From contig OZ296656.1 of NCBI GenBank assembly GCA_965655095.1, positions 55,490,001-55,554,000 on the forward strand: DNA of 64,000 nucleotides. Reading direction: 5' to 3'. The position numbers were made by a program, and so were the translations under genes. Below the pieces are notes generated by a model. The model was not told the origin of the DNA and ran no database searches. It saw only the letters and a list, made by a program, of their open reading frames with translations. Positions 33,334 to 61,999 of this stretch are shown one piece after another (positions within the stretch are counted from its first letter, which is position 1; each line of letters starts with the position of its first letter). This DNA is from Haplodiscus bocki (taxonomy: Eukaryota).

Positions 33334-33658
33334 TTCTGCATAATTCTGAAGAACAACATTACCAAGATTCCTTTGGCGTTTCTTCTGGGTTTCTTCGTGT
33401 CTCACGTGTACTCCCGATGGTGGGCTATCTACAACTCGATTCCCTGGCCCTTCTCGATGATTGACGCTTTATGTCTCACTCTAAAGGTCCCAGACACGGT
33501 CCCAGCCAATGAGAGAGAGGAAAAGCAGCAAGAGTTGAAGATCATCATACAGACCGTGTCTAGATACATGCATTTGAGTCTGGCTATGGTCATGAGAGAC
33601 ATCTGTCTACAGTTTCGCGAACTCATGAAAAAACGACAACTCACTTTTGTTGACATGG
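33334..33658 (+). CDS. BEST: Bestrophin coding exon 2
   Basis: Acceptor TTCCTTCTAG; KIPLAFLLGFFVSHVYSRWWAIYNSIPWP (bestrophin IP..F.LGF.V...RWW...PWP); donor GTTAGA, phase 1. Confidence 0.93.
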
Positions 33659-33913: not shown

Positions 33914-34134
33914 GACTTGCCAGTGAAATAGAAATGGCTAAACTATACAGCACAAAAGAACTCATGGACTTCGAGCTGAGAAAGTTGAATTGGGACTCAT
34001 CCAAAGTGAATGAGAAGAAAAGATGTGCGAGTTGGACCTGGTGGGTTCCTGCTGCATGGGCTACTAGACTAGTCAGGGATGCGTATGATCGTGGGTTTGT
34101 CGACAGTCACGAAAACGTCACTTTTGTTTACGAA
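33914..34134 (+). CDS. BEST: Bestrophin coding exon 3
   Basis: Acceptor TTTTGCAG; (G)LASEIE...WWVPAAWATRLVRDAYDRG (cf. FWVP..W); donor GTAAGT, phase 0. Confidence 0.9.
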
Positions 34135-36137: not shown

Positions 36138-36215
36138 AAAATTCACCAGTACAGAGGCCTGGTCGGAGGACTCGTGGGGTATGACTGGATCTGCGTGCCT
36201 CTGCCTTATTCTCAG
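36138..36215 (+). CDS. BEST: Bestrophin coding exon 4 (not in ORF track)
   Basis: TTTCCAG|KIHQYRGLVGGLVGYDWICVPLPYSQ|GTAATT (cf. YDWISIPLVYTQ). Confidence 0.93.
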
Positions 36216-40531: not shown

Positions 40532-40765
40532 GTTGTAGCACTGGGTGTTTATGTTTACTTCTTTTTGTCGCTCTTTGCTTACCAGACTGTAGAGACTATC
40601 AACTTGGGCTCTAATTATGATACTTATTTCGTGCCTGGTGGATTGGTCTTGGAATTCATAATCTACTACGGCTGGTTCAAAGTGGCCGAGGTGCTTCTGA
40701 CCCCCTACGGAACAGATGTGGGATACAATTACGACATGATTGGAGTGTTTGCTCTGCAACTTGAA
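40532..40765 (+). CDS. BEST: Bestrophin coding exon 5
   Basis: TTTTTCAG|VVALGVYVYFFLSLFAYQ...FVP...EFIIYYGWFKVAEVLLTPYGTD...LE|GTAATC; 78 codons. Confidence 0.93.
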
Positions 40766-41162: not shown

Positions 41163-41320
41163 CAAGCTAGATCGCACGTTGAGTACTCATTCAGCTTGGA
41201 TGACTTCCTCAAAAAGGACCCGACAGAGAGTTTGAAGGTGTTAGCACGTGTGCCCCTGGAGCAGTTGTTTGTCAGCAACATCAACGAGAATTTGTTCGGT
41301 TCTCTCGTCAATGGAATCAT
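41163..41320 (+). CDS. BEST: Bestrophin coding exon 6 (not in ORF track)
   Basis: TGTTTTAG|QARSHVE...LKKD...NLFGSL (bestrophin L.KD and F.GS motifs)|GTTAGT, phase 2. Confidence 0.8.
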
Positions 41321-44300
41321 GTTAGTAACTAAATATTTAAAATATTTTGGGACAAAAGCAGACTTGGCTTGAAACTCAAAAATTGTGACTGAAAGGAAGC
41401 AGTTTTTAGGATTTTTTAATTTTGCGTCGTAATATATTGCGGAAGGAAAATCTTATTCTGTGAGTAGACTTTTTTCCGCTCGTTCGTCAATTCTGGCTCC
41501 GTCAACTTTTGTCCAACATATCCGCTAATCTAACTAATGTTTGGAGCATTTTTGTAGCAAGTTGATCTAAATATCTCTGATTGATGAAATGTTCAAATTA
41601 TCCGGGATGATAAAAAAACAGACAAATCAATTTTGAGAACACCATCCAAAATTTTCGCTTAAACTCCGAAAAGTTCTGGAAATGTATAGATTTTCTCTCC
41701 CAAAATGTCCCTTTGGACACGTAGAAATCGGTTTTGAGAAGTTTTTGTCCAACATTGTACTGACTGAGCTAAAAGGAAGACTTCTCGCACTCAAATGTAC
41801 CTATGTTTTTCTTAAGTTTTTAGCCATTTCGTTTTTGAGCCATTTGTGACCGATCCACTGTCGATGGAAAATATCGATGCGCTGCTGTGCCTCTTATTAT
41901 TTTCCATCATTTTTCAATATGGGAAGAAAATCTTCCTCTCGCCGAGTGCATTATCAGTCGGTGCTCTACAAAACAATGCCGGTTAAGTCATTTTTTAAAA
42001 CTTTTTGTAGGACAACAAACAGACTCACTTCGAATTGGTCCATTTTTTGTACAGTTGTAGTATTTTTCTTGCAAATCGCTGTTTTTGATGCTACGAATTG
42101 TACGATACCTATCAAAACTATTAGAATCGAATAGAATTTTTAAAAAGTTCGTGACTTATCCCTTGATTATCCATCACTCCAATATTCCCTATTTTTAACA
42201 TAAGGAAGTAACCACCACACTCGAATAAAAGCCAACGTCGACTGAATGATAACATTTTTGATGTTTTGTGGTTGATAGGAGAATAATCGAATTGAGGCAC
42301 AGTCTGTTCCGGCAACGCCCTATATTATCCTCCCAAAAAATGGTTCGCGAATGCTGGCGAAAGTCGCAGGGATTATTCAACTTACCGCTGGTATACTGAA
42401 ATTTCTTGAACAAAAAGCAAAATTATGGGTCAATTTTTTTCCGGGAAAAAACTAATGTCAAAACACTACCAATACCCCCACTTATCCCTCGATTTACCGC
42501 TTTTCCAATATCCTTCATTTGTGACCGCATGCTTTTTGGTTGAAGTTCATAATCGTGAAAGTCGTTTTTACGCCGAGTTCGACCAGATGATTACTTTTAT
42601 GATGTTTCATTCCAACTTCGCTGATGAAATTCGAGCTGGCACTTCAGCCGAAAATGCTGCTCTAATGCTGGCGGAAAGTTGAGGTTTTATTTAAATTCCC
42701 TTTAAAACACAGTTTTCATCGAGATGCCAAAACTTCGCAACATTGTGAGTTCCCCTTAGAAATGTTTTGGAGTTAAAGGTGGCACAGACTCTAGCCATTC
42801 CTGACTTGTTTCATTTTTACGTGCCAATTAGTAGCGCGATTGCAAGAGATTGTGACTTTGGCATATCAGTAACTTGTAGCAAATTTGTCGGAAATTGCGA
42901 GTGAAGTGGGTACATTGCTCGAAAAGTACGAAAAATCAGTTTTTTTGAAGATTTCCTTTTTGAAACCTCTGTACAATGAGTTTAAAATGGCAAAATTTCC
43001 TTAAAACGCTCGAAAATGGCAGAAAAGGCAATTTTTTTAAAAAAGACGAAAGTTTAATATGGAAGACGAAGGTATTCGATCTTATAGTGACATCATTTGA
43101 CTTTTTCAAATATCGAAAAATATTACAGGTACGACTGCTTTTTCCAGACCACGAAACCATGTCCGGACATTTCTGCCTCACTTGGCCAATTGAAGTAACG
43201 TGTGATTGCGTCACTTCCTCACGTATTGTAACATGTACCGTGCTTAAGGCGACAGTGCTTTTGTAACTTTTGAGTTCCATGTTTCGCCAACAATCGATTT
43301 GAATTGTAAATTTTGCAAGAAAAAGACATGAATAAATGAAATTTTTGACTTTTAAACTATTGCTCTGTTTTGGGATTTTTCTGGTTTTTGCGGAGGAGCT
43401 ATGATTAACGTATGAGGCTCTAACGGGCCACATAATAAATTTTGGTTGCGGTCCGAATTTTTTTCGACCGCTATTTCTCGCTTTTCCGATGATGCTCTGT
43501 CAGCTTTATGTCCTCTATCCTAGCACCTAGTTGTGAAAATCAACAAAATTTGGCTGAGGGAACTCATGGAAAAAAATTATTTGATCACATTGAAACTTGG
43601 TTGCTATGTGAATATTTTTCGACATGCGGAAGAAACTTGGAAATTGAGCTATTTTTGACTTCTTCGAAGATATTTCATCGTTTTTGAGGTCTATATGGCT
43701 GGGCCCATACCTCAAATTTGCACAATTTCTGCTCAAACAACATGGACATCGATCAAATACTTAAATATTTTTCGCTGCGGTGTAAGAGTTTTTCGACAGG
43801 TTTCTAACGAAAGAAATTTGAACTTAGCTTTGATCGCGTCTGTCACTTTTAATGTCTTACTACTTTTTGGCATATAAGCGCTCAAACATTCAAGTTTTTT
43901 AAGGACGTGAAAATCAGAATTCAGTCCATCACATGGAAAGTTTCTATTTCTCTTGCGAAACGTTTTGTCGAAAGAGACGTGAAAATCTTTGTCATATTCG
44001 ATGTCATATCACCTTGCCTGTCTCCAAAGCTCCAATATTTTCTGTGGGTGCCCAGCCGTTAATGGCATAAATGCTTTGTTTAAAAGCAATTTCGTGTCTT
44101 TTCGTTTTCCGGGAGGATCTGGTACTTGCAAGAAGACAAACCAACCAGACTTTTGTCCTAGTTTCATCACTTTTCTGACAATTTTCCGTGTTGCAATGAA
44201 ATTCAATATAGCGTTCCCATGCTTCGATATACGAGCCCCGACAGGCGACTATTTTTCCAGACATTTGTTCATTAGACAACTGCGGCAGATCAAAGTTGTA

Positions 44301-44474
44301 ACTTTGTTGTGAAGGTCACTTCGTTTTACTGTTGAATTAAATGTTTAATATAACTCAGTAATTTAATAGTGTTCAGTAAAATGAACAGTTCAGCGCCTCG
44401 CATTTCGATTCTTCGCCGTTAAGTGCAGAATTGCATTTGTAAAATTCAACACTCGATTATGTGACATTTACGTC

Positions 44475-44523
44475 AGTAGTATATGCTGGGGGGGGGTCCC
44501 CCGCACAGTTTCATGGCTCCCTA
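44475..44523 (+). repeat. Maverick left TIR
   Basis: AGTAGTATATGCT-G9-TCCCCCGCACAGTTTCATGGCTCCCTA. Confidence 0.95.
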
Positions 44524-45197
44524 AATTTCATCGAAGTTTTTACCAGAAATTTAACTCCCGAATGACCATATATGGTTACCAAAACACTCTCTGATAATAA
44601 CGAGAGCTATCACTAGACATCGGAACTTCACCCTAATATATTGTGTTGTCAATGAAACCGAAATTTATAGAAAGGTTTCACAGGATATTAGTCTCCAAAA
44701 CTTGAAAATAGCAAGGCAGTGTGGCACGAGTGATTAGGCCTGCAGCAAGGGGTTCGTGGTCCGTAGGATCGAGGCTCACTGAAATCACTAGCGCTACACT
44801 ACCATTTTGGTGAGAAATGCCACTTACCATTCCAGCTTGAGGGCAAAAGTCCATACTATTTGTATAAAATACGTCAAGAGTTCCATTATTCGTATAAAAG
44901 ATTCCAAAGACACCGCCCATAATATTTTTGACACTGCTACATTAGTGTACACGCATACTGGAAACATGAACAACACATGATGAGATATAGCAGTAAAGTT
45001 CAGCATGATCCGTGCTATCAGCTTCAGATGTTTTTTCCATTTTAGGCCTTAAAACCAAATTCAAGCAATTAAAGTCAGAATTATCTTGAATACTCCTAAA
45101 ATATTCCCACCACACATGTCAACAAGAGGAACTGAGCAGTAATTCATTTGCTTATATATTCATTCCTCGAGAAGAATAGCTCCATTAGAAGCTCATC

Positions 45198-46307
45198 ATG
45201 TCTGTTGCAAGAGATTCATCAATTGAGCGCATGCGCTTTGCTTTCTCTTATACGAAACTAACGAAATTATACGAAACTAACGAAATTTACGTGCAAAAAC
45301 TTTGGAGCTCATCAGATGAGGAAATGATAGATCCCCTGGCACAAAAGGAATTTCATCGGTTGTCAGTAACACCTCATTTGGTGGAAAGTTCACCAAAATT
45401 TCTCAAATGGGCCATAGATTTTTCAAATCTAGAATTTTCTGTAACTTTACATTCACAAAATGACAATCAGAAAAATGAAACGGACATATGCTACGACTAC
45501 GGAAGAATTCACTACCATTTGGTGTTTTACAGCGTCAAATTCCCGAAGACAATGGATAAATTGATCAAAAAGATTTTTAATACTGCATTGTTGGAGACAA
45601 TGGTGGGATCACACAGCAGTTACAAGATAGAAATGTTTTCAACAGCGAGTGCAGCTTCCAGGAAAGAGTTCCTCAGAATTACGAAAATTTTACTGGCATA
45701 TGGACCCACAATTCAACGTCATTTCAGCGAATTGAACCACGTTAATACCCGGAGTAACGTTGACTGCATCTGGGAAAAAAGTCAAGCCGTGAGAAAAAGC
45801 TGCAATGATGGCCACGTAATGAAACAAGCACAAATTCTCGACAAACTGGAACGTTCATCAAGTCAATTCAAACACTCCGTAACCGCTATCATCGATTTTT
45901 TGGCTCGAAACAGTTATGGAAAGTTTACGACGACTGAACACAGCTGCACTTTGAATGTCTCTCTCGAACTCGCCAAAGCGCAATGTGATTGCGACGAGTG
46001 TTTTCTAATTCACAACGAGGAAAGAGATGAACAACAATCGATCAACAGTGAAAAATTTCAATACAAGATGAAGGAACCATACTTTTTGAACATTCAATTC
46101 ATGATAAATTTTCCCAGAAAACAGTCGGTTGTGACAATGTATCCTGATTATTATACGGTCAAACAAGTAATCAAAATTTTTGATAAGGTAAAAAGACTTT
46201 TTCCTGAGAACCCAACGAGCAAAAATGCTTTCCTTGCGGTATGCAAAGTAATTAGTTCAGACAAAGATTTGAAAGTAATTAATTCTGAATGCGAATACGG
46301 TGGTTAG
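45198..46307 (+). CDS. Maverick accessory ORF, 369 aa, function unknown (HUH-like GRIHYHLVFY)
   Basis: Uninterrupted ORF inside the TIRs; no family firmly recognised. Confidence 0.7.
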   Translation: MSVARDSSIERMRFAFSYTKLTKLYETNEIYVQKLWSSSDEEMIDPLAQKEFHRLSVTPHLVESSPKFLKWAIDFSNLEFSVTLHSQNDNQKNETDICYDYGRIHYHLVFYSVKFPKTMDKLIKKIFNTALLETMVGSHSSYKIEMFSTASAASRKEFLRITKILLAYGPTIQRHFSELNHVNTRSNVDCIWEKSQAVRKSCNDGHVMKQAQILDKLERSSSQFKHSVTAIIDFLARNSYGKFTTTEHSCTLNVSLELAKAQCDCDECFLIHNEERDEQQSINSEKFQYKMKEPYFLNIQFMINFPRKQSVVTMYPDYYTVKQVIKIFDKVKRLFPENPTSKNAFLAVCKVISSDKDLKVINSECEYGG

Positions 46308-46569
46308 ATAGGACCAGGCAATAGCAGACTTCATCCTTTCCTGCAAAATTTCGAACTTTTCCGTGTTCATGCAGCATTCCATGATGCATTTGGATTCATG
46401 AAAACGCAATACAACTTGGGACCAGGATGTATATGCTTTCGGCGAGAAACCAATTTTTTAAAACTGCTGTCTGCTTGGTCACGTTACGGGGCTGTCGGTT
46501 TGTATTTATCTCAATCTCACAATGTCGGAAAACTATAAAGAATTCCCATTTTGAGGAGAAGGTTTCCAG

Positions 46570-46866
46570 ATGACAGCTGCTTCCTCCTTGCTTCCAAGCG
46601 CAGTTCTTCAACTTTCGGTTGATTCAAAATTGTATGTACAATATAATAATTATCACAACGAATTTCGTATTTATCTCGAGAAATTTGATTACCCGGTTCG
46701 TTCGCAAAACAAAAACTACAAAATTAGGCATTTGACTCCACTAACAGTAGACGAGTTACTTCATTCGACTGAGGCTTCGAAAGTAATTTATTCCACACTT
46801 CAGTACAATCACTACTTCACCCAACAGCAGCATCGACTTCACTACCAACAACAATCAAATTCATAA
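46570..46866 (+). CDS. Maverick small accessory ORF, possibly a PC4-like ssDNA-binding protein
   Basis: LQLSVDSKLYVQYNNYHNEFRIYLEKF follows the PC4 beta pattern (F.IG..RYV.V..FKG...IDIREY); weak. Confidence 0.4.
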   Translation: MTAASSLLPSAVLQLSVDSKLYVQYNNYHNEFRIYLEKFDYPVRSQNKNYKIRHLTPLTVDELLHSTEASKVIYSTLQYNHYFTQQQHRLHYQQQSNS

Positions 46867-47149
46867 GCAAGGAATAGATCAACTGGACACACCAATATGT
46901 CACTGGTGGGAGCATCATCTTTGACAGCGAAGAAAACGAAAGGCCTCCGTGGATAATCACATGCTGCTGCGTTGAAGGAAAATGTGAGAGGTCACTGTTG
47001 GTTTTACTCTTACACTACGGAGTAGTGTTATTATTGGTAACGACTAGTATTGTAGTTCTTATTTTCAGACACAACGGAAAGAAAAGCAGTTTTGGAGTAC
47101 TGGCCATTCTAGCAGCGTGCTTTGGGTATATAATTCCGTCACCGAGACA

Positions 47150-47844
47150 ATGAACAAAATTATTAGCATGGATCCTCACTGCTTTCTTACGGTCATTGCA
47201 CCCAGTGGTTCGGGAAAAACTCATCTAGTTGCGCAACTTCTACGACAGCATCGCCAATTTTTCAAACCCAAATTTGAACAATTTGTCTACTTCTATAAAC
47301 ACTTTCAACCCATTTACGAAGAACTCCTGCTCTCCCTGGGACAGCAAAAATTTCATCTATGTCGAGGAGTCGATTGGTCATTTCTTGACAAAGTTACAGC
47401 ATCAAACAAACCAACCCTTTTGATATTTGACGATGTTTATCAAAATGTCTCCGACACTAAAGAATTTTTGGATCTTGCTATCTCGGGACGACATCAGAAC
47501 CTACATTTATTGGTTTTGAAACATAACTTGTACCAACAATCAAAACATTCAAAAACCATACATTTGAACGTAACACAGATGCTCCTGTTGCGCAATCCAA
47601 GAGATGACAATCAAATTGACTGTTTGGGAAGGCAGTTGGGATGCCGAGAGCTTCTGCTAAACTCCTATAAAAAGCAACACAAGATCAATTTGGTCATTTG
47701 CTGATTGATCTCGACCCTCGTCTGAACGAAAATCTGCGTCTATCTTCCAGCATTATATCAAAGCCTGCAATTTTTTATTGCAACTCAAACGACAACAAAG
47801 TGATGGAACTCAATGATTCCTTCACAGCGTTTATTTACGGTTAA
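47150..47844 (+). pseudogene. Maverick A32/FtsK-like genome-packaging ATPase (one frameshift near 47670)
   Basis: Walker A APSGSGKT, Walker B LLIFDD, GRHQNL...KHNLYQQ; continues as KATQDQFGHLLIDL in a shifted frame. Confidence 0.93.
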
Positions 47845-48139
47845 GCTGTTTTCATCATTTAAACCTGTGTTAAAGAAGCATTTCATTTTGAATTGCAGCG
47901 ATGCAATAATTAAACTTTTCTGTAACTGCGTTTTCAATATCAAACAAGGATCGATAGAACACCAAAATGTCAAAATTCAGTCTCTCAAGAAAAGGATGAC
48001 GCTCATTGAGAAGCTTTGCTCGTCGAAAATTAGACTGGTTTTGAAAAGAGGATTACTTACTGGCTTCGAAACAAGAACTCAGTCTCTTGCGACTTTTGAA
48101 CAATTCAATTCTGAGATACCTGAAACTGCAATGCTATGA
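47813..48139 (+). CDS. Small basic Maverick ORF following the ATPase
   Basis: ILNCSDAIIKLFCNCVFNI..G resembles the 'I..ICEC..N.L.G' small protein I recall in Mavericks; family name not certain. Confidence 0.55.
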   Translation: MIPSQRLFTVKLFSSFKPVLKKHFILNCSDAIIKLFCNCVFNIKQGSIEHQNVKIQSLKKRMTLIEKLCSSKIRLVLKRGLLTGFETRTQSLATFEQFNSEIPETAML

Positions 48140-48753
48140 GCAGCAAAGCAACAGAGATTTGTTCTTGTTCCCGCTGACGTCTATTTTGCGGAAGCACGAT
48201 GCGATATAGTTGGATTACATTCCTCCTCGGTGCTGGATCCTTCAGAACCAGAAAAGATTAAGCTCTCACAACAGAAAATTAGACTGGAAATTATTGAAGA
48301 AAAAAGCGCCGAATCACCGTTGGAAACTACGAACAAAACAACTCAAGTGAGCATTCTCGACCGACTCAAGCAGCTAGAGTCAAATGAAAAGAACGGAAAG
48401 AGCGACAGTTCGGTCAGCGTAAGCAACAAAATACAAGCGGTCATCAGAAAATTGATTGAGATTGGTTTGAGCAGTAGTAAATAAGAAAGACAGGGCGTGA
48501 TACTCGAGCATTTTTCAAAAATTCCCGATTGTCTCTCAACGAACTGTTAGACATTCAACTTGACGGAAATGCGACAGAATTGAATCTATTAACGTTTTTA
48601 AGCGATTTGCAAGTCCTGAACAAAAAACTGAGTGAAAGCGCGTTGAACGTTCTCCGCCTGCTACAAGTCAGCAAACATATCATCTCAAACATCCGAGGAA
48701 AAGATGTCGCTCAACAGTTTTCCACATCAGTATTGTGGATCGAACGCTTCTAA
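48136..48753 (+). pseudogene. Interrupted Maverick hypothetical protein
   Basis: Fragments 48230-48484 and 48529-48753 plus upstream MSSKAQRFVLVP, between ATPase and integrase. Confidence 0.45.
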
Positions 48754-49945
48754 ACTGAAAGTGAGGAGCCTACCAGGAGTTATTCACACACTTGATCAGA
48801 GCAGGAGTTGACAAGAATCCTGGACCTTTGAAGTGCCATTGTTGTTCGAAAAGTTTGGGAAGAAGTATCAAAAAGGCACCAACATTATGGTGTCACGTGT
48901 GCGGATGGCTTCATTTCAAATGCAGTGGTTTAAACTCACCGGCCGACTATGAAAAATCACCAAACTTCCGATGTACGTGGTGTTTAAAAAACACGAGATT
49001 CGCGCTTCAGGCACTACAAAGACTCTACACGACCTTAAACAATCCCTCAGCTTCCGGTTCGAGGCAACCGCTGCGGAGCGCTGCAGCAACAAAAAGAATT
49101 ACTGGCAAGCAAGTGGACAAATTTCTTTCACTCAGTGAAACATACACAAAGTTCCGCGCGAGTAAAAACATTTTCACTCGACTGAAAGTTCAATCCTACA
49201 GCATCAATGAAATCTGGTGTGGCGATTTGGCAGACGTGCATCAACTGGCCAAAGACAATGATGGAAAGAAGTTCCTTGTGGTTTTTGTAGACTGCCTCAG
49301 CCGTTTTTTACGCGTTGAACCCATCGACAACAAGTCAGCTAAACAGACAAGAGCAGCATTGGAAAAAATGACGCGAAAACGAAAACCCGAAAAAAAATTG
49401 GGTTAACAAAGGAAAAGAGTTCAAAGGGGAATTTGGAAAACTTTGCTTGGAGAAAAACATTACGGCGTACAGTACTCATAGTGAGCAGAAGTCGTGTTTT
49501 GCGGAGCGCTATATTCGAACCCTCAAATCAATATTGTTCAAATACCTGCATAAAAACAACACGAGAAAGTACATTGATCAAATTCAAAACTTTGTCAGCC
49601 TAATCACCTCACGTCCCAACAGAACAGCCAAAATTGCTCCCAAAATTATTACCCAACACGATGTACGTTACTTAATTTCACGTCAGCCAATGCCAGCCCA
49701 ATTCGGAAACCACGATACCAAATAGGCGACACTTTACGGATTCGGTTGAAAGTTCTAACATTTCATAAAGGCTACAAAATTCAATTCACAGAGGAAGTTT
49801 CCGAAGTTGTAGCTAACCCAACGCTGAATCCTCCTACATACAATATCAAGCACAAACTTGGACAAATGATTCAGGGCAAATTTTTGAGCAAGAATTAGTT
49901 TTGTTTCGATATAATCGAGAAGACAGTTGGTTGCTAGCTAGCTAG
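48704..49945 (+). pseudogene. Maverick retroviral-like DDE integrase with N-terminal 2A-like peptide and PHD finger; frameshifted
   Basis: AGVDKNPGP; CHCC..CHVC..H..C..CTWC; IWCGDLAD, VDCLSRF, WVNKGKEF (second D replaced by N), FAERYIRTLK, FHKGY...FTEEV...QGKF..QEL. Confidence 0.92.
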
Positions 49946-49948
49946 AGG

Positions 49949-50760
49949 ATGATGGTTGAGCAAAACTTCACAATCAACCTGGTCTCGAATGCTTCCATGG
50001 ACGTATTTCCGGCAAACACCATGGCTCGATTCACAACATTTGCCCAACAAAGTAGAGCTAACTGGAGATTGGGAGGTCGCGCTGTTGGAAGTGTCTTGGC
50101 CGGGAAAAATCAAAAATATGACAAATGCATCGTTCACAATCAGTCGCTTTGATAATGCAAACAGACCATTGAGGCCCGAGCACAATCAAACCATCCCAGC
50201 AGGTTTTTATCCCACTGTAGACACTCTGATGACAAAATTGTTCAAAACAATCTATGAACACGGCGAATACGACAGTGTCACGGAAGGTGGACCCATTGAG
50301 CGAGAAACTTGAAGTGTCGTTGACAGGTCAAGCACCCGAGGACCATTTCTGGATTTTGTTCAAATCTGATGATCTGTCAAAAACTTTGGGAGTGATGGAT
50401 GCAATTTGTGGCACCGTCGAATCACAACGTCAGAAAGGTTTCGCAGCACTAGGCACTTTTCCGGTCGATTTGGAAGGAGGCCGACATACAATGTTCATTT
50501 ATTGTGATTTGGTACAAAACAAAATTTTAGGTGGCTCTCAAGCAGCACTACTGAGAGTGATCCCATTGCAAGAAAACGTAGCATCCACTGGAGCAACTTG
50601 CTACAGAACTTTCGACAAGATGCAATGGAAGCGACTGAATAAGAGTAACTTTCAATCAATCACAATCAGCCTCTGTGACGAGAGTGGTCAACTGATGCCT
50701 TTTGTGAGCATTGGTAGAACCAGTATCACATTTTCCTTTCGACGACGCAAGAAAAAACAT
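49949..50760 (+). pseudogene. Maverick minor capsid protein (penton, PX); frameshifted
   Basis: FTINLVSNASMDVFPANTMARF../LP..VEL.GDWEVALLEV, IPAGFY, MFIYCDLVQ...G....LLRVIP, F.SI.I.L.DE.G..MPF. Confidence 0.88.
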
Positions 50761-50850
50761 CGTCATTCGGTTACAGTCAACTTTTATGAGCAGTTGTGCG
50801 GCTCCGGTGCAATTATCTTCATCATCATCAGCAACATCATCGTCATCAGC

Positions 50851-51317
50851 ATGGATTCGTACTACGCATCTCGGCCACGAGCAGTGTAGGTACGTTTCAC
50901 GGGCCCGCAATAGAGTTTGGTTCAGAGGCCGGATTGGGAGCTTTTGCACTACGCGTTGGACACACAGCCATGCCGCTCTTGAAGAAATATGTAAGCCCTT
51001 TTGTGAAGCAAGTGGGGCAGAATGTTTTGGAAGCGGCTTTGCCCGGAGTTGTAAGTCTAATTAAGGGGAGAAAGGGAAAGCAGTCGTTAAACAAACGAGC
51101 AATAAAAGACAGCGCGAAAAAAGTTTTGGCAAAAATAGTTGAAACACACGCCGCGGCGGGCGGGCGGCTGGCCGTCAAGCCGGAAAAGAAAAGCAGCGCT
51201 TACAGTCAAATCATCGTCCTCCACAGTCATTTCAAACACAAAGTCTGCAAAAAGAAGTCGGCTGGATATTTTGGCAAACGTGAAATTCAACAACAACTCC
51301 TCCGTGTGACAAAATGA
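50851..51317 (+). pseudogene. Small basic putative virion core/cement protein
   Basis: MDSYY...G.GLG.F.LRVG..AMPLLKKY amphipathic basic pattern between penton and MCP; frameshift near the start. Confidence 0.6.
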
Positions 51318-52654
51318 ACAGTAATTGTGGTACAAGCAACGCATTTCACCCACGATTTCATGGTCGAGCATCAGACGTGACCAACCCGGTAGCGCACGGT
51401 GCTCTCGATTTTTTTGAGACCGTCAGTGTTGATAAATTATGAAGGATCTCAGGACCAAGAAGTGTTTCCACAAGTTGGCTGCCGTGGCCCACAACTCGAT
51501 TTTGTCGTTACGTCCGACAGCAGAAATTTGATTGACTTGAACAAAATCACACTTGACTTGGAATGCGCAATCTATGATTCAGATGGAAGAACCCCTGCCG
51601 AGGGATCTATCCCAGTCTGTTTTACCAACAACACGCTCCGCAGTCTTTTTTCACATGCTGAAGCTTTTCTAAACGGGATACTGATATCAACAAGCAACAA
51701 TGCTTACCACCACTCGGCCTTTATTGAGACGGAAATGACCACAGACTTGGTCTCCAAAACAACCTGGGCTGAAACTCACGGTTATCAATACCAAGGAGAC
51801 AAAAGCACAGTTGAAGAAGTCAATAAGTGGAGAAAAGAAAAATTCAAGCAAGGAAAATGCACAAAAAACAAACTCAAACTTGATGGAGCCCCTCACATTG
51901 ATTTCTTTGAGTGCGAAAAGCTTTTGCTGCCAGGCGTCACACTGCACTTACGCCTTCATAGATCGAGCAACGACTTTTCCCTACAATATTTTGCTGAAAG
52001 CGACGATAAATTTGTGATCGTTATTGAGAGAGCTTCAGTGTTTGTGACGAAATTGATTTTGAAGGATTCTGTACGTCTGTCAATAGAAAAAGCACCAATC
52101 AACGCGCGATTGCATTACCCCTGCATTGAAATGATGAACAAAAGTGTACAAAAAGCTGGACAAAACAGTTTTGTGAAAGAAAATCTTTTTGGAACAGATC
52201 CAGTGAGACGACTAACGTTATGCATGGCAACCAATGAGCAGTTCCGTGGAACACTGACCCTCTTCACTATCAACCATTTGGGCTGCAACGGCTGGAAATT
52301 ACGCGAGGAAATGGAGTTCCAATTCCAGGAACACCGTTGGATGTGCGGAATGGAAGGATGAGAGCCTACTACAAAACCATTTGTTCACTTGGTTTTTCTA
52401 GCGGCTGCAAAGGAAATGGAATTGTTTGAGGAAACTTTGAGGATCACTTTGTTTTCGTGTTCGACCTAACATCCACGAGAGAATCTTCAAATAGCTTAAC
52501 GCTGTTTCCTGAGCTCACTGGAGATAGTCTCACGCTGAAGTTACTGTTTGAAAAGGCCTTGGAAAAAACAGTCAAACTGTTTGTCATTGCTGAAAAATTC
52601 AGTCAAATTTTTTTAGATTCGCAGCGAAACATAACCAGAAGTTCATTACTCTGA
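51314..52654 (+). pseudogene. Maverick major capsid protein (double jelly-roll, PY); frameshifted
   Basis: LSIF..P...PQLDFVV....IDL....L..NNTLRSLFS....LNG..I.....Y..AFIET..HIDFF..EKLLLPGV.L.LRL.R; C-terminal FDLT fragment 52457-52654. Confidence 0.88.
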
Positions 52655-52680
52655 AGATTGTGCTATCTTATCCACATCTA

Positions 52681-53198
52681 ATGGACAACTTCAGTCTCCA
52701 AAAGTTGGCCTTTCAGTGCAATCATCTCACTGAATTCTTTCGTGGAGTCCGCAGTGCCGACAACTTCCCGTCAATGTGTAATGACAACGAAGAAGACGGG
52801 AAAGCGTTGTTTCAAATTGTGAATACAGAACCAAGCTATCTACAGGGAAAACACTGGGTTTTACTTTGTCGTCGAAAAAAACAGTCTGGGACTTTTGGCA
52901 AAAAAGATCCGTGCATTGTGTTTTGGGATATTTTGGGAAACGAACCAAAAACTTACAAAAGACTATACACGAGAATAATGAATATGTATAAAAAATTTTA
53001 GTTTTCAACCATCCTCTTCAGAGCCATTTCTCCAACTGTTGTGGATTATATTGCCTACTGATGGCACATCATCTACCAAAATGTGAAAACTTTGAAACTA
53101 TTGCAAAAACGATTCCAAGCAGGATGGTTGATGAGCACATGCTGGTGAGTTTTTTGAATTACCATTATAAAACGTATTATAGCCTTTTGACTACATAG
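52681..53198 (+). pseudogene. Adenain-like cysteine maturation protease (one frameshift near 53000)
   Basis: FRGV.SAD.FP, IVNTEPS...GKHWV, FWD.LG, then LQSHFSNCCGLYC; catalytic H/D/Q/C retained. Confidence 0.92.
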
Positions 53199-53234
53199 TT
53201 ACGATGAAGCTGATCAATTCAAATATTTTTATGG

Positions 53235-53256
53235 TTCTTCTTCCTCCTCCTCCTCC

Positions 53257-53324
<68 letters not shown>

Positions 53325-53372
53325 TACATCATATCATCATCATCATCATCTACATCATATCATCATCATCAC
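53235..53372. repeat. Compound (CTT/CCT)n-(CAT)n microsatellite
   Basis: Long perfect CAT run with degenerate flanks. Confidence 0.97.
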
Positions 53373-53782
53373 CATCTTCAACTTCTGAGGCTTCTTTGAG
53401 TATAAAATGACATATTTTGCTGGGCTGGTCGTCATCTTCATCACAATCAGTGAGATTGTCGAAATCAACAATGTCCGACGAGTCATCATCATCAACTTTT
53501 TCATCATCGGAGCGCGGTATAAAACCAGTATCAATGGTACCTAAAAGAGCAAAAAAAAACAATTTTGAAGGAACACTGAGATTTATGCAAAGTGAAAAGT
53601 GCTCAAGGGTGTACAGTAACTTGCAATAGATGAAGGTGATGAGCAATAGGCTACAGAGACATTTTCTGCCCGCCTATGACTCAGTGATGTTGATGATGAA
53701 GTTGTGGAGTGAGTTTCACATTCATCATCATCCGCAAGAACTGCCGTGGTTTTTATCAGCTCACTGTGTACATGTGGGCCAT

Positions 53783-56700
53783 CTAAACACTATTAAAAGA
53801 TGAGAGTCTATGATGTTCAAGTGAAAATTCAGTGGAACCAAAAAGAACATTACAAAAAGTACTTGTCTGATCGAGGGAATAATGACCATAGGCGAAAGAC
53901 TGAATTCCATCCTCCAAGATGAAGCGTTTGCCGTCAAAAGCACTCACGACAATTTTGTTGATTTGAGTCACGAGCAATTGATGCTGTTGAGATTGAATTC
54001 AGGTCACGTTCTTACGAATGTTTCCTCTTGAAGACAAAACATCATTGAAAAGATCTTGGTGAAGGGTTTTTCACGCACTTTTGGACACCCTCGCACTGTT
54101 TGATCCCACTTTCATATTTGATGCTCTAGAGTTTTGAGCGAAGACAAGTCGCTTCCAACATGATTTGACCAGTCAATTCATCTTTCATTGTGAGTGGTAC
54201 TTTTTTGTTTGTGCAATCGAACAATTTGTGATTTTGGAGAAAATCCGACAAATCGAGCAAATGCTTGAAAGACTCCATATCAGAGTAGAGATCATCGGTT
54301 TCTATTCGATGGTACAAAGGATCGGTGTCTTTGTACACGACTTTGAGGCTATCTCCAAACTTGGGTTTCATTTCAATATAATGAAATTTGTAGAGAACAA
54401 TTTTTGATAAGTCCAGTATAGCGGCCCCGACAGGCGTCGGCTTATTCCAAAAAATTGAAGACTCTGAAGTTAACTGACACAAGGCTGTCGTGAATAATTT
54501 GAGAATTCAAAAAGTGGGTTTTAGTGTGCAGGCTTTTGCCTCAGGTTCAGTGGACAAAAACTTGGTTTGTCTGCGATTTCGCAAATTTTGCATTGTCTTA
54601 CCAAAGCAGGCGTTTAAAAGTAGCTTGAAGAAGTTTTTATCGATGTCTGTTTTGGCTTGTTTCCGCAAGGCTGTGTTTTTTGAGATATAATTACCCAACC
54701 AGCAACTTTGATCAAATTGAAGCACACGATGAAGGCGCTTCACCGTTAAACCCTTCTCCACGTTAAAACTTCAAATTTCTAAAATGACAAATATAGAAGT
54801 TTTTATCGAAAAGAGTTTCGACCAGCTTGGCAACTTGCGATGCTGGAATTCCAAAAGACTTCGCATAGTCCGATAGCCATTCAGTTTTGATGTAATTTTT
54901 CGGGAGCGCGCGGCAAATCGTTGTGATGGTCATGCAAATGAAGAGGTTACTCTAAATCAACTTCAACGAAGTACCCAACGCCACCGAAGCAGTCTGCATT
55001 CAGAATGTCATCGATGGTCAAATCGTTTCGCCATTTATAATTGCCACATGGGAGAAGCTGTTGCATCGTTCCGGAATAGAGTCATGTGACATCAAAGAAA
55101 GCCTCAAACACAGATGGCTGAGATTTATCGAAGTCTTCCATGTACTTTTTTTGGCTTTGAAGTGCCTCATAGCACCGATTGCATTGATGCCACCACGAAT
55201 GGCTCGCTCACAAAATAGCAACATGTCAATATCACTCAAGAGACCGATTTCAACTTTAGTGGTATTCAACATTCCTTCCCAACTCAAGTTTGGAGCTCGA
55301 AAAGATGAACTGGGTCCAAATGATACTCTGAGACAAACACCACGGAAAGCTTCAAAGATATCTGCTAAGAGATAGACATCGATAGTCAAATAAAAATCGT
55401 GATAGTCACTTATGTTGTTGCAACGCATCAGTGTATGAATCTCCTTTGCCTTTTCATAGTCTTGTTCACTTATGTCTATTTTTCCAGACACTGTTTCTCC
55501 AAGCGTCCCCGTAAGCAGGAAGAGGCTGGGAAAATTTTTCAAAGCTGTCCAAAAAATTGTCAGGGAAAAAACCTTTGCCTCGAATTTTTCCAAAATCAAA
55601 ATCGCTCATGTCAGAAAACTTGTTTCGAAGCAGTTGGAGTGATGAGGTCTGCATAGTTTTTGCAAGACTTTTAAGGCTCTGAGACATAAATTGAAAACTG
55701 TCCAAGAAACGAATTTCGCTGTCAAGAGGCACATGTCTTCCATCTTTGCATATGTGTTCAGAAAATTTAATTCGTAGTCTGAAAGAAATGTACACCTCAT
55801 CGTTTCTGCTAATGGCTGAAATCTTCTCGCCAGGACGGACAATCAAAGATTTCAAAATATGATGGGCATCATATCTCGACAGGTTGTGGAACAGTACAGG
55901 AAGGATGCGTTTCGTCTGAGCACGCAAGTTGCAATTGGTATGCGCTGTTCTCAAAACTTTCCCCGTTGAATGGCCATGATGTATAACAGGGGAAACAGCA
56001 ACAAATTCATTGCAGATACAACAATTAATATCCACAGTGGACGCTAAGTAGACTTTTTGGTGACTTTTACTCATTGCATCATTTAAATTTTTAAATTTCT
56101 GCCATTCCGAGTCGCACCAATTGTTCCATCGACGAAGGCAGTTCATCAGAGTATTAATACTATCCTCACCGCGGTAAAAAGACTCGGCAATGACAGAATT
56201 GGTTCGACCATCCACCAGAATGGCCCCATAACTAGCCGGAACTTGACGTTCAAGGATAACTGTACTTTTCCCTTTGGCAACATTTATTGCAACATTGAGA
56301 GCCTCCAAATCTGCGTAAACAACGAAAGGACACTTTTGGGTTCTCTCCCAATTCACAAATTTCAATTTGAACTCCTCACTAGGCATCACGATTCTCAGAG
56401 GTTGATTGTCTTCACACAGCCGGATATGATCAGCGTATTTATTTTTTCCGATGGGTAGCATACAATTCACACAAGTTTGTCCTTCGGCCTTTTTCGGCTT
56501 TTCCTAGAGAACGACATAATTTATGCATCAAGTTTTGAAAATTCATTATCAAGCAATAATGAAAATTCAACCCGTCAGTGAGTAGTAACAAGAAAACTTT
56601 TCGGAAGTTGCCCTTCAGCTTACTCCTATGACCACAAAAGAGCAAGCCATCATCATCGCGACTCGAAACGGTGATCGCTAAACTGTTGTTTGTTTCAAAC

Positions 56701-57613
56701 TTTGGAATGTCTCGAAGTTTCATTGGCATAGATGATCTGTCGAAAACAAGTCGATCAATTTTGTCACTATAGTTGGATGGTCGCTCTCGATTTTTTGCGC
56801 AAGGGTAGAGGAATGACAGAATGCAGTATATGAAACAAATTGTCTGACAGATTTCTGATATTCAAAAGGCTATATCGAAACCGAGCAAGTTTTGTTGGAG
56901 TCGGTATAAAGGAACTGCCAGCCAGTGATCAGGTTTTACAAACTTTAATATCCAATGATAGAAGTTTTCCGAGGACCCAGCCTGAGCCCCCACTACAAAA
57001 TACATTGAGTTGTCGAAGAGTTGGTTAACCAATTCATTGAGATCGCATTCATCTATAGACTCCACAACACGTCTTAATCGTGTTGAAAAGTAGGGAAAGA
57101 CATTTTCCCCATCCAATGGTTTCGAAAAGACTACTTGAATGCATAAGCCAACACGTGATATCCCTTGGTTAGTTATCTCTTTGTCAATTAAAAGAGCAAT
57201 ATCAGACCGGTTGCTCATCATAAAAGCGAAAGGATTGACTCCTCCCTGTTGTACGTCCACTCAATGGAGTTTAGGGCTGATACAACTGTTGAAACCTGTG
57301 CAACAGAGGCCCACTTAATTTCATTGACAAATGTTGAAGACGAAAGAGTAGAATGTTCAGCGGCTCTGTGATTACAAAGTGTCGATTCATGCCCAAAAAT
57401 TTTCGGACCCGCATTGCAGCTAATTGTTTTCTTGAATTTATGAACATTTCGCAGGTGACGGAGCAAATTTTTAGACGTAGTGAAAATTGAGTTACAATGT
57501 CCGCAAGTAAAGGCACATAAAGATCGTTCTCGTTTGTTAAGTTCGCGGATATGCTTCAACAATGTTCGTTTTGTATCGAAGACGATACCACAATCAGGGC
57601 AGGGGAGAAACAT
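53783..57613 (-). pseudogene. Protein-primed family-B DNA polymerase (pPolB) with N-terminal C2H2 zinc fingers and an endonuclease-VII-like insert; multiple frameshifts and stops
   Basis: GSGWV, ExoI VYADLE, ExoII FHNLSRYD, RFLDSF, KGFFP, Y...DV.LLADIFE.FR, IRGG, FDVT*LY, KLLLNACFGKT, YKDTDP, DGKR....I..AYGHY. Confidence 0.95.
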
Positions 57614-58177
57614 TTAGCAGTTCGTCAATACCAAAAAAGTCAGTCGATCGAAATGATGCTGGGTGAAATCAAAACTAGTTGCAATCTTTTTGAAATTAGC
57701 CCAATTGATAGTGAAACCCAACCCTACCTTCAAAAATTTTCTCCCGATTTTTTTGCTAATTTCACCGATCATCACAGTGGAATTTTTCGAAGTTCAAGAA
57801 ATAAATGCGTTAATTGAGCTTTGAAGAGTATATTAGGTACAACAAGCGATTAAAAATGATCCTCTAGACAGTGTCTAATTCTGTTAACATTCTATCACAG
57901 CTCTTGTAGAACGAGTTCGAAAGGTTCACACGATCTATCAGATAATGTCAGACGGATCCAACAAACGGTTGACGGACTTGGCGAGACCCCCACATCAGGT
58001 AGACCATTTAGGGAGAGCACTAACTCTAGAACTTTGGCAAGTCTGAAGCTATCTGGACATAAGGATAGATAGCGGTTAAAATAAAATTCACTTGTCAAAT
58101 CGAAGGTATAAAAAGAAGTTCTGTCAAGAGCAAAGTTATTCATCTCAGTTATATCGCAGAAAGCATACGAAAACATA

Positions 58178-58525
58178 ATGCAGAACTTTCTATCTATCAT
58201 AATTCACGATTCCCGCGAAGTAACAGTTCGCAGTAGCAGCCCTCGAAACGGTGAATTTGACATCAAAGTGCTGAAAAAGAGACTTGATGAGTTTGGCGAA
58301 GCGGGTGGTGTGATTGAAACGGAAGTCACTTTCCGTCAATCCTCCTTCACTAATCTTCTGAGGCTCAACTGGACAAAGCTCTTCTTCTCGATGTTGGGCA
58401 AATCCCAAATTCCGGAAGATATGAAGATTCCATCTCTGCCTGACTATGATGTGGGCCTGCGCAATGAGTCAAGATTCACGACAACAATCTACTCGGAAAG
58501 TAGTAAGATGAAATTTCACGCCTGA
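58178..58525 (+). CDS. Maverick accessory ORF, 115 aa, unknown
   Basis: ATG-initiated ORF divergent from pPolB, inside the TIRs. Confidence 0.45.
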   Translation: MQNFLSIIIHDSREVTVRSSSPRNGEFDIKVLKKRLDEFGEAGGVIETEVTFRQSSFTNLLRLNWTKLFFSMLGKSQIPEDMKIPSLPDYDVGLRNESRFTTTIYSESSKMKFHA

Positions 58526-58635
58526 AACCAAAGCAGGTTTTGATAAATCATTAAATATTTAGAAAACTAGTATCTCACTCGCTCAATTGTATTGCATGGT
58601 AATTGGGCAAAATTTGAAAACAATAGCTCAATTGA

Positions 58636-59109
58636 GTGAGGGTTCATTGTTTAGGTCCGAAGAGTGCATTTCGAACATCCGTCAATCTGTTTAATTCCAA
58701 CTGCCACACCAAGAAAGCTGTATACATAACCCTGAAGTTATTCAAGTATGAAGTGGAGTGGTCGCAGTTCACTCGAATTGGCCAAGTCATCACGCTTCAT
58801 CATTGTGAAATGATGCGATTAATCCTCGAATATAACGATTACTTGGAGCAAGCGGCACCAAATATTGACATCAGTGAGGGAGCTAACTTATCTGCACCAG
58901 TAGTAGAAAACGACGAAGAAGAATACAGGCCAATTGTGGTGTTTAGACCGCCACAAAAGAAAGCTAAGACAGCAGCGAAGAATACGCCGCCTAAGAAAAA
59001 TACGAAAAAGACAACAAAGCAAACGGATAAAACCCAGTCCACTTCAGCCGCTACAAATACAGCTACAACAACCAAAACCGAAGATGTTTTGATCGAAAGT
59101 GATGGGTGA
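58636..59109 (+). CDS. Maverick accessory ORF, possible PC4-like fold with acidic then Lys/Thr-rich tail
   Basis: FRTSVNLF...VYITLKLFKY...QVITL...E...L pattern; PPQKKAK NLS-like tail; true start uncertain. Confidence 0.5.
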   Translation: MRVHCLGPKSAFRTSVNLFNSNCHTKKAVYITLKLFKYEVEWSQFTRIGQVITLHHCEMMRLILEYNDYLEQAAPNIDISEGANLSAPVVENDEEEYRPIVVFRPPQKKAKTAAKNTPPKKNTKKTTKQTDKTQSTSAATNTATTTKTEDVLIESDG

Positions 59110-59886
59110 CTTTCGTTGATTAACTTGAATAGGCATATAAGAAATATTCAGCTGGAATTGGAAATTAGAAAAGAGCATTAGTAACATTGTAAATGTTACT
59201 CTATAAGTTTAAACTAAGTATTTCAAACGTATATCTAGCCCGTTTTGCAGGGATTCAATCAGCATTAACTTTATAAAATTGCAATTGAAGTTTGAAACTA
59301 ACCTTTTGTAGAAGAGTTGCTGGAAATTTCCGAAAGTAGCTGAGCATTCTTGCCAATGAATTGAGAGAGCACTGTGCCTTAGGATAAAATTGAAAAGAAA
59401 ATAGACCGCAAAAATTTCAATTTTGGAAAACGCATAGCGAGATCGTTTCAAAAGTAATCTAGTTCGATTCGATCCCACCTCAAGCTCATCCAACTTTTTT
59501 GAACCCAAATTCCGACAAAAATTCGGTTATTTGGTCGAGCGAACAAAATTGACACGAGCAAAAAGAATTTTCCAATCCAAAACCCCTTTTATAATTGTTT
59601 CACAATCCCGCCAGCGCCAGCGGGCTGTTCCATTTGGCCCAGAATTCGCGACTTACATGAAATCCGTCGTAGTATAAACCACTAGGCTACAGGCACCATT
59701 GATTTCAGCTGAAACGAATTGGTCATAAATGCAGTAATGCGAATAAGCAACACCATCGTTTAATACTTTCTTTGAGCATATTTACACGGTATATGCCGAA
59801 AAGAATGGAACGGCATTCACACAACATAGTTTGATCAATATTCTAAGTCAATTAAGTTCAATATGTATGAATTTGATGACGTTATA

Positions 59887-59935
59887 TAGGGAGCCATGAA
59901 ACTGTGCAGGGACCCCCCCCCCAGCATATAGTACT
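59887..59935 (-). repeat. Maverick right TIR
   Basis: TAGGGAGCCATGAAACTGTGCAGGGA-C10-AGCATATAGTACT, the reverse complement of the left TIR with few differences. Confidence 0.95.
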
Positions 59936-61999
59936 TACGTCAAAATTGAAAAGTTTCAAAATTGTAGAGATCAGTATTTAACAGGCAGTAGCTCACATGT
60001 ATCTGGCTTAAATTTAACAAGCTGGGATTATGAAGACGGTATCACATTTTTTTCAGTGTTGTATTCTTAACTTTTTATCGCGCAAATTCAAACCCAAATC
60101 AAAGTTTTTCGTGAAGTATCGTGAAAGTCACTAGAAGCTGAATTTTTCCGCATAAGCGTGTGGGTATGGCAAAAAGTTTCGTTTTACATTTGTAAAATTT
60201 TTGCTAACGCAGGCAAAGTTGTCGCGAAATTTGTACTATTTTTTCGAAAATTTTCGGTTTACACAAAGAGTAGCAGGAATGGTTTCGGTCTTTCTGTTGC
60301 CTGGATTTTTTAATATGTCACGATAATTGAAATAAAAAAGTTGGGTGTTTTTAGCCTTTGGATGATGTCGATGGGATATTCGTTCATTTTGGCTGATATA
60401 CCTTGACAAGCAACGCTTTTTTGTTTTCCGCCCATAGTTATAAATTGGAAGGAAAATTATCCACTGAAAACGCTGAAATCGAACGTGTTTTAGATTTTTG
60501 CCAATTGTTAATTTCCGATGTAAGTGAAACTGTCCGAAGTTCTGACCGTGAAATTTTTCATACCAAATTTCTTGCAAATTTGCCGTAGAATGCAATTGAA
60601 ATAGTGACGTTTCTCAAAACGTACGAAATTTGTTTTTTATGGACTTTTTTCCGGAAAAGAAACTTGATTTTTTTTTCAAAATCGGTAAAGGTAGCAGATT
60701 TACTGTAGAATGTGTATATCAAATGATACTATTTCATAAAAATGTCGTCCATCTGAACAAAGGGTTTTTGCAGAAGTCAGAAAAATTTTAAATTTGGAAA
60801 ATTTATCAAAATTTGCTGAAATTAATTTATTCGAGAAAACGCTTTCATCCTTCTAAAAGGTATCTTTAGCAAAGTTAAAGGGTGGAAAATATGCCGGTGG
60901 TGGCCGGCGATCTTGTATTTTATCTAGTCTAACGCAGAGTTTTTATTGCTTTACCGTCAATGTTCGCTTTTGATGGGATGCTAAGTAATTCAAGGCACCT
61001 TCTTGACTTCTAAACTATTCACATTTTCTGAGATTATGATAATTTCTTTATCAAATAGGTTCTCTTTTCGACTTTATCCGTCAGTTTATGTGACGTTATC
61101 AAACATGCTCTATTACTATGTCAATTTCTTCGCGCTTGTTGCTTATTTTTTATCGATACTTAAAGTAGGCTGTTTTGATAGCAGTTGAAAATTGATAGAA
61201 ATAATTATCTTTCACTTCAGTCACCTCAATGCTCGAACCCCGCCAAGAGCCTATTTTTTTTTAAAAAAATGGAAATTTTTCAATTTGGGAGAAAATGTTA
61301 AAATGGCATAATAAAGAAGGCATAATAAAAGGGCAAATTTTCTTGAAACGTTTTTCTAACAGTTAGAATGCGCCAGAAAATCCCGGTGGTAGCCGTTTGT
61401 TTTGTTTAGTATCCTATAAACAAAGTTCAACTACATTTTTTACATAGAAGCGTTTTTCAGAGCATCTGGCAATGAACATGTTTGGCGACATATCATAGTG
61501 ATCAGAAACCAATGAGTTGCAGGTGCTTGTCTCAACTTGGATTTTCGAGCTTCTTCAATTGTTTTCGGCACTATTGTTGTTTGATTCAATTCTTGGCCGC
61601 GCGATCTCGAAATGTCAATAAGGGACTAAAAACTTGTGTCAATTGCATTTTAAAATCAAATCCTCTTTGAATAATGCTTTTATTTTCCAGTATTTTAGTG
61701 ATCATTGATCGTTTTGTCTTTGAGTTTGTTGCAAAATAGAGATTCGTCTTCGTTAACCATCCACTTTTATGTGCGCACAATCATCGAAAATTGTCTGGAT
61801 AGAAATTGTTCGTATTATTCAAAAATTTAGTTAATATGAGAAGTGAATAAATCAAACCGAAGATGGGCGTAATGCTCAAAATACTTTGAGAGTTATCATT
61901 AAGGTGGCAAACGCCAGCCTATCATGGTCGACGCGTTTTTCTTGTCGTATCGTTCACAACTCGCACGAGATGATAATGGGATGAATCTAGTTAAAGTCG

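Follow-up and report, generated by a model that had tools for sequence, protein, structure and literature searches.

Sequence evidence for a rewritten and strongly constrained clasp in an acoel bestrophin

As far as can be read from its sequence, the bestrophin gene of the acoel Haplodiscus bocki is an intact and strongly conserved gene of the animal type, in which the Ca2+ clasp has been rewritten and is held under constraint in its new form. The encoded channel probably differs in its gating from every bestrophin examined to date. Canonical high-affinity Ca2+ sensing has likely been lost, judging from the replacement of D304 by an invariant Asn and of E306 by an invariant Asp, with D301 kept; a weakened Ca2+ site is possible.

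The gene was rebuilt from pattern scans and tblastn searches with the proteins of relatives, followed by inspection of the junctions. It extends from 16951 to 62897 on the plus strand of the window, i.e. the whole stretch of 64,000 nucleotides that was analysed, and consists of seven exons which join to 1458 nt, or 485 codons:

16951..17142, plus strand: exon 1, codons 1-64, with the start ATG, the N-terminal segment MTVSYSYEVSNNK... and TM1; donor gtaagt, phase 0
33334..33658, plus strand: exon 2, with TM2, the neck and the RWW motif; acceptor ctag, donor gttaga; Pfam PF01062 E=2.2e-17, profile positions 69-149
33914..34134, plus strand: exon 3, cytosolic helices; found by tblastn with the S. 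roscoffensis protein (66% identity); weak Pfam match, E=0.013
36138..36215, plus strand: exon 4, KIHQYRG...YDWICVPLPYSQ; Pfam E=1.7e-6; boundaries ccag and gtaatt, phase 0
40532..40765, plus strand: exon 5, with TM3-TM4, the coupling Trp W320 and the remodelled clasp; flanks tttttcag and gtaatc; Pfam E=8.5e-13
41163..41320, plus strand: exon 6, with the helix that follows the clasp and the first part of the C-terminal tail (QARSHVEYS...FGSLVNGI); tblastn with XP_063719642, E=6.6e-14
62648..62897, plus strand: exon 7, C-terminal tail, with the stop TGA at 62895-62897; acceptor ttcag; tblastn with XP_063719642, E=7.9e-8

The joined sequence contains neither an internal stop nor a frameshift, all donors are GT and all acceptors AG, and the phases fit, in agreement with a preliminary description of this DNA, which had called the gene open with good splice sites. 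Exon 1 aligns with residues 1-63 of human BEST1 from residue 1 onwards and free of gaps (phmmer, E=2.9e-8). Its V9 and S10 are the equivalents of V9 and A10, whose backbone carbonyls form part of the canonical clasp, and the N-terminal start segment is identical in the NCBI models of both acoel orthologues. I take the Q|V exon boundary before TM3 to be common to the acoel gene and vertebrate BEST1/BEST2. Exon 6 has the acceptor ttag and the donor gttagt, and its last 2 nt are part of a split codon; exon 7 carries the conserved motif DIP-x-FI-x-D-x-S-x-x-LW-x-LP-x-x-VWNN, and the joined frame stays open until the stop. What looked like an N-terminal exon with a frameshift, at about 33.0 kb, was rejected; it lacks a Pfam signal, and the true exon 1 lies at 16951.

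The clasp exon could in principle be an artefact of assembly or annotation, or be one of a mutually exclusive pair whose other exon, in another part of the gene, encodes a canonical clasp, and the non-acidic clasp of isoform X4 from the crustacean Cherax quadricarinatus, which might be a splice variant, could be cited in favour of the latter. However, pattern and tblastn scans of the whole 64-kb window revealed no second clasp-type exon, exons 4-6 are reproduced by contigs of four DNA runs from two samples, and the same loop is present in the independent NCBI models of two other species. This reading is already essentially refuted, and I give it next to no weight.

The loop itself lies within exon 5. 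Positions 40700-40735 (plus strand) encode TPYGTDVGYNYD, corresponding to T329-D340 of the gene model, and the wider stretch 40670-40765 (plus strand) translates to GWFKVAEVLLTPYGTDVGYNYDMIGVFALQLE. Extended by one residue, the loop reads as follows:

40700..40738, plus strand: remodelled clasp loop T329-M341, T-P-Y-G-T-D334-V-G-Y-N338-Y-D340-M

Residues 1-62 of exon 5 align by phmmer with residues 239-301 of the solved BEST1/BEST2 and no further, so that similarity is lost exactly where the acidic cluster should go on, and the single Asp of the loop can be identified as the equivalent of D301. Alignment by MAFFT to 40 canonical bestrophins requires an additional residue directly after this Asp and shows the substitutions D302 to G, D303 to Y, D304 to N, F305 to Y and E306 to D; as the exact place of the inserted residue is ambiguous, the identity of the residue replacing D304 is uncertain. 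In the same alignment N308, W309 and D312-N314 of the helix after the clasp are also replaced, and the column of E300 holds Lys or Arg in two of the acoel species. The canonical E-D-D-D-D-F-E-x-N-W has become x-D-[VL]-x-Y-N-Y-D-M in acoels, in a loop that is one residue longer. One of the five acidic residues of the cluster E300-D304 is kept in H. bocki, namely the D301 equivalent, and the same is true of both orthologues; the H. bocki protein thus lacks the canonical clasp, as defined by E300-D304 with the carboxylate ligands D301 and D304.

The alignments with BEST1/BEST2 and by MAFFT thereby confirm the preliminary description in its claims of a bestrophin without the acidic Ca2+ clasp, the EDDDD cluster being replaced, and of a one-residue insertion, whose position is the ambiguous one just mentioned. 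Its claim that a single Asp (D301) remains is correct within the five-residue cluster, but a second Asp, D340, is found just beyond it, in the column of E306. The three acoels share G-x-D-[VL]-x-Y-N-Y-D-M as the clasp and, continuing from it, the longer motif G-x-D-[VL]-x-Y-N-Y-D-M-[IV]-G-x-F-A-L-x-L-E-Q-x-R-x-H-V-E-Y-S, with D334, N338 and D340, all bearing oxygen in their side chains, invariant. The N-terminal segment that partners the clasp, S-Y-S-Y-E-x-S-N-N-K, is likewise acoel-specific and conserved.

Outside the clasp the protein is an ordinary member of its family. Separate exon pieces match the Pfam Bestrophin profile PF01062 with E=2e-17, 8.5e-13 and 1.7e-6, scoring 63.7, 48.5 and 27.8 bits where the curated cut-off is 24.2, and a fourth piece scores 15 bits; the pieces cover profile positions 69-301 in order, and a chance match can be dismissed, which places the protein among the animal-type bestrophins. 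The neck, IPLAFLLGF at 33367-33393 (plus strand), occupies residues 76-84 of the model and aligns with I76/F80/F84 of chicken BEST1 (codons of I76 at 33367-33369, F80 at 33379-33381 and F84 at 33391-33393), so that the I/F/F neck residues are indeed kept, as had been stated earlier. The coupling Trp, W320 (40673-40675), is the equivalent of W287, and its surroundings G-W-F-K-V-A-E align with G-W-L-K-V-A-E.

The fold was predicted on the orthologue from Convolutriloba macropyga, which is 65% identical, as an AlphaFold2 monomer with an alignment of 50 rows. This model has a mean pLDDT of 72.6 and a pTM of 0.71, with values above 90 in the core helices, about 75 in the clasp loop (residues 331-340) and below 50 in the tail after residue 372. 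In a Foldseek search of the PDB with the orthologue model, the top 22 matches are all BEST1/BEST2, with target-normalised TM-scores of 0.71-0.84, and the best of them, human and chicken BEST1 and BEST2, reach E values of about 1e-16 and TM-scores of 0.78-0.84; the bestrophin fold is thus predicted for this orthologue. A closer relation to the clasp-less bacterial and plant branch (KpBest / VCCN1, Bestrophin_2 type) was not found: in the same Foldseek search with the C. macropyga model, the KpBest matches have E values of about 1e-4 to 1e-5 with 15-17% identity, while BEST1/2 reach about 1e-16 and 25-29%. The record of the Symsagittifera roscoffensis product carries a faint PF25539 flag and nothing further in this direction.

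Relatives were sought by an exhaustive HMMER search of 1.84 billion representative proteins with the 78 residues of exon 5 as the query, which gave 128 proteins with E<=1e-3. Foremost among the foreign matches is XP_063719642 from S. roscoffensis (E=1.7e-27, 69% identity across all 78 residues), whereas the next one has E=3e-12 and 40% identity and covers residues 1-62 only. The full-length S. roscoffensis isoform is XP_063719641, with 492 aa, and a second search retrieved the orthologue of C. macropyga (XP_075260189-91); a word search with the exon-5 ORF among proteins of similar length returned its own ORF as the sole match. The H. bocki protein is 60% identical to that of S. roscoffensis and, as stated above, somewhat closer to that of C. 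macropyga. Both orthologues have NCBI models with multiple isoforms, three in the case of C. macropyga, and bear automatic names such as 'bestrophin homolog 24-like' and 'bestrophin-3-like'. The S. roscoffensis gene has the same seven-exon plan as that of H. bocki. In isoform X1 of C. macropyga the equivalent of exon 2 is split into three, including a micro-exon of 12 nt (L002:12704-12715).

The nearest representatives outside the acoels, from a centipede, a nematode, an acorn worm and a beetle, are ordinary bestrophins with the acidic cluster. Among the clasp motifs of the 128 nearest representatives, 110 of 119 have four or five acidic residues in the six positions after P-F-G, and the clearest non-acidic exceptions besides the acoel pair are one Cherax quadricarinatus isoform and two models that are apparently truncated or read through. 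Within these 128 representatives, the acidic cluster is therefore missing only in the acoel group and in a few odd or truncated models. In a maximum likelihood tree of 20 full-length sequences the three acoels form a clade (SH-aLRT 100) whose stem measures about 2.5-3 changes per site, with H. bocki as sister to S. roscoffensis plus C. macropyga. Branches within the trio are short (0.17-0.23), and the end branch of H. bocki measures 0.23 against 0.33-0.38 for the other two. Judged by these searches and this tree, the proteins form a very divergent orthologue group that has so far been seen only in acoels. As acoels are generally fast-evolving, the divergence may in part be shared by the whole lineage rather than peculiar to the bestrophin gene. 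Searches of the literature yielded no paper that deals with acoel bestrophins or with an animal bestrophin naturally devoid of the clasp, and those on Ca2+-independent invertebrate bestrophins and on heteromeric assembly gave nothing relevant.

In order to estimate constraint, coding sequences of the orthologues were extracted exactly from the genomic loci of S. roscoffensis and C. macropyga. Among the three acoels, pairwise pS is 0.80-0.82, which is saturated, and pN is 0.19-0.26; raw proportions are given because saturation of the synonymous sites leaves dS undefined with both NG86 and YN00. The resulting pN/pS of 0.23-0.32 is an upper bound on omega, for which maximum likelihood gives 0.01-0.07 as a rough figure only. 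Both lie well away from the dN/dS near 1 that the preliminary description had associated with a pseudogene. Alignment columns 321-350, which include the clasp, are invariant between all three species at 24 of 30 positions, more than in any other 30-residue stretch of the protein. From G-W-F-K onwards, a block of 36 residues has 28 invariant ones, and 20 of these 28 are encoded by different codons among the three species, so that the constraint must act on the protein. The H. bocki branch is no longer than the other two, and there is hence no sign of relaxed constraint in this species. With a dN/dS far below 1 and with the replaced loop more conserved in the three species than any other part of the protein, the bestrophin appears to be a working gene, and sequence evidence, as far as it goes, excludes a pseudogene.

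Polymorphism in the second sample agrees with this picture of the coding sequence. Sample S2 (run X4) has two variants in the clasp, 40717 T>C, a synonymous change in D334 (GAT>GAC), and 40718 G>T, which results in V335L and thereby in the Leu found in both orthologues; its two variants in exon 4, at 36173 and 36179, are both synonymous.

A recently silenced or decaying copy would nevertheless be conceivable given the introns. The first intron measures 16 kb and the last one (41321..62647, plus strand) 21.3 kb, both much larger than in the orthologues, where the last intron has about 3.3 kb, and the enlargement of both is due to repeats. Most of the excess in the last intron is accounted for by an element of the Maverick/Polinton type at about 44469-59941, with ORFs at 47117-47701 (plus), 48792-49403 (plus) and 55466-56467 (minus) and Pfam matches to an A32-like packaging ATPase, an rve integrase core and a B-type DNA polymerase. 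Silencing could have been brought about by this 15-kb insertion or by a retroelement fragment upstream. However, insertions in introns are commonly tolerated, the 1458 nt have no stop, frameshift or broken splice site, the H. bocki lineage is not accelerated, and the coding polymorphism is synonymous or conservative, while a short intron stretch beside exon 6 holds three variants. I consider silencing very improbable.

Several further features of the window may be recorded here. About 0.9 kb upstream of the bestrophin start codon there is an ORF of 340 aa at 15040-16062 (plus strand) with an RVT_1 match (E=2.8e-17), probably a retroelement fragment in the promoter region of the gene. Intron 4 contains high-copy repeats at 37160-39990, with a summed contig word depth of 700-18,000 against about 40 on the exons, and these repeats show hundreds of alternative joints in all four DNA runs. 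A (TA)n-like microsatellite is located at 40033-40088, and a run of 200 N at 4339-4538 represents an assembly gap or a mask.

In the canonical channel, the Ca2+ of each clasp is bound by the D301 and D304 side chains, by the carbonyls of A10, Q293 and N296, as well as by a water molecule, and E300, D302 and D303 are believed to increase the Ca2+ concentration nearby (PMC8496536). The clasp has been called conserved among metazoans and absent from KpBest; it is disordered when free of Ca2+, with the neck closed, and its signal is relayed by W287, as W287F is almost Ca2+-independent (PMC6342527). Mutagenesis of hBest1 residues 293-308 gave channels that reach the membrane and lack Ca2+ activation in 33 of 35 cases, and E300Q, D301N, D302N, D303L and D304N each abolish Ca2+ activation (PMC2585866). 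In plant VCCN1 the acidic loop is missing, and voltage gating proceeds via another element at the same place (PMC9076864). The earlier suggestion of a Ca2+-independent, differently gated or regulatory bestrophin would, by analogy, fit the hBest1 mutagenesis record (PMC2585866).

The reading I prefer, with a probability of roughly one half, is that the canonical Ca2+ site is gone, that the loop rich in Tyr, Asn and Met serves as a latch for the N-terminus which is free of Ca2+ or binds it with low affinity, and that another input sets the neck. Loss of the canonical nanomolar site is suggested by the removal of four of the five acidic residues, the insertion, the Lys or Arg at E300 and the replacement of the next helix. 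The new loop is under the strongest constraint, which suggests that it still works as a gating module. The protein would then presumably assemble as a pentameric, conducting anion channel, whose neck would no longer be driven by nanomolar Ca2+ at the canonical clasp. The loop rich in Tyr, Asn and Met would in that case pack on the co-varying N-terminal segment (SYSYE-x-SNNK), as a latch that is either permanently ordered or of low affinity. Opening might be set by phosphorylation, the conserved C-terminal tail, volume, voltage or pH.

Alternatively, the modified clasp could still be activated by Ca2+ through D334, the Asn in the D304 column, D340 and backbone carbonyls, with an altered and probably lower affinity and a gating that is qualitatively canonical. 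In this case one would expect what is seen of D334, N338 and D340, which do not vary in the three species, of the N-terminal partner segment and W320, which are conserved, and of the loop of the C. macropyga orthologue, which is predicted to be ordered (pLDDT ~75); moreover, three of the canonical ligands, A10, Q293 and N296, contribute backbone carbonyls (PMC8496536). However, conservative single changes in hBest1, D304N, D302N and E300Q, already suffice to abolish Ca2+ activation (PMC2585866), and here only one of the five acidic residues is left, the loop has gained a residue, two species have Lys or Arg at E300, and N308, W309 and D312-N314 of the next helix are replaced too. I regard retained Ca2+ activation as possible, though rather unlikely. 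If the channel proves to be activated by Ca2+ in the normal way, what is left of the finding is an unusual loop that binds Ca2+.

The strong constraint on loop and tail would also fit a role in interaction, e.g. that of a non-conducting or modulatory subunit which joins a canonical bestrophin of the animal in heteropentamers and adjusts how these respond to Ca2+. A purely regulatory subunit had been put forward in the preliminary description, and none of the present results supports it. This seems improbable, as every pore determinant of a conducting subunit is kept, as the searches described above recovered no canonical paralogue from any acoel, and as the very long stem branch implies subunit interfaces far diverged from those of canonical bestrophins. 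Vertebrate bestrophins, in addition, prefer homomeric assembly.

Two other regions could bear on how the channel behaves. In exon 3 the columns of the aperture region read V-D-S-H-E-N (34102-34116, with H at 34108-34110 and E at 34111-34113). In a MAFFT alignment that is unsure at this place, because exon 3 alone has no sequence match in the PDB, the aperture column of BEST1 residue 205 is an invariant Glu in the three acoels, preceded by His, Lys or Arg, while it is variable and mostly hydrophobic in canonical bestrophins; if this alignment is right, ion selectivity could differ. The C-terminal tail (41163-41320 and 62649-62730) contains the acoel-conserved H-V-E-Y-S, L-F-V and F-G-S-L-V, in addition to the DIP motif of exon 7, and is a candidate regulatory or inactivation peptide.

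Following the preferred reading of a latch with low or no affinity for Ca2+ further, I tentatively suggest, and with some doubt, that acoels could be the first lineage with an animal-type bestrophin in which a Ca2+-free Tyr-Asn-Tyr 'latch' permanently holds the N-terminus and the neck is driven by another signal via the acoel-specific tail. S. roscoffensis and C. macropyga host photosynthetic algae, and bestrophins conduct bicarbonate; that the host channel might be adapted to a constant supply of anions or bicarbonate is pure speculation. A natural lineage in which the clasp is rewritten and most constrained, and in which the neck gate and the coupling Trp are kept, amounts to a ready-made experiment on the path from sensor to gate. 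The contacts that suffice to order a clasp in the absence of Ca2+ bear on how clasp mutations cause disease, and the acoel bestrophin adds a marker gene family for acoel-specific innovation.

Compared with vertebrate BEST1/BEST2 (human, chicken, bovine; PDB 4RDQ, 6N28, 8D1O, 6VX6), the acoel protein shares the family PF01062 and, according to the orthologue model, the fold, the identical numbering of the neck I76/F80/F84, the coupling Trp and the YDW...PL..TQV motif. It differs in having a single Asp left of E300-D304, one additional residue and other residues in place of N308/W309/D312-N314, and also in its identity of about 25-29%, in some 33 extra residues in the cytosolic loops and in the tail after residue 370, which is unrelated to the vertebrate tail and yet conserved among acoels. 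KpBest from Klebsiella pneumoniae (PDB 4WD7) is a pentamer of the bestrophin fold that has no clasp and is insensitive to Ca2+ (PMC6342527, PMC8496536), from which it follows that this fold can be gated without a clasp; however, KpBest is bacterial and cation-selective, whereas the acoel protein is of the animal type and would have lost its clasp secondarily. VCCN1 and the bestrophin-like channels of plants and algae likewise have a loop without acidic residues between TM4 and the next helix and are gated by another input, voltage, but VCCN1 has about 9% identity to animal bestrophins and is regulated by an N-terminal extension of its own, which is missing in the acoel protein. The clasp mutants of hBest1 (Xiao et al. 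2008) are changed in the same columns and in part to the same residue, Asn in the D304 column. Those mutants are disease alleles or lack function; the loop of the acoels, by contrast, is naturally fixed under purifying selection, and the flanking helix and the N-terminus have changed along with it.
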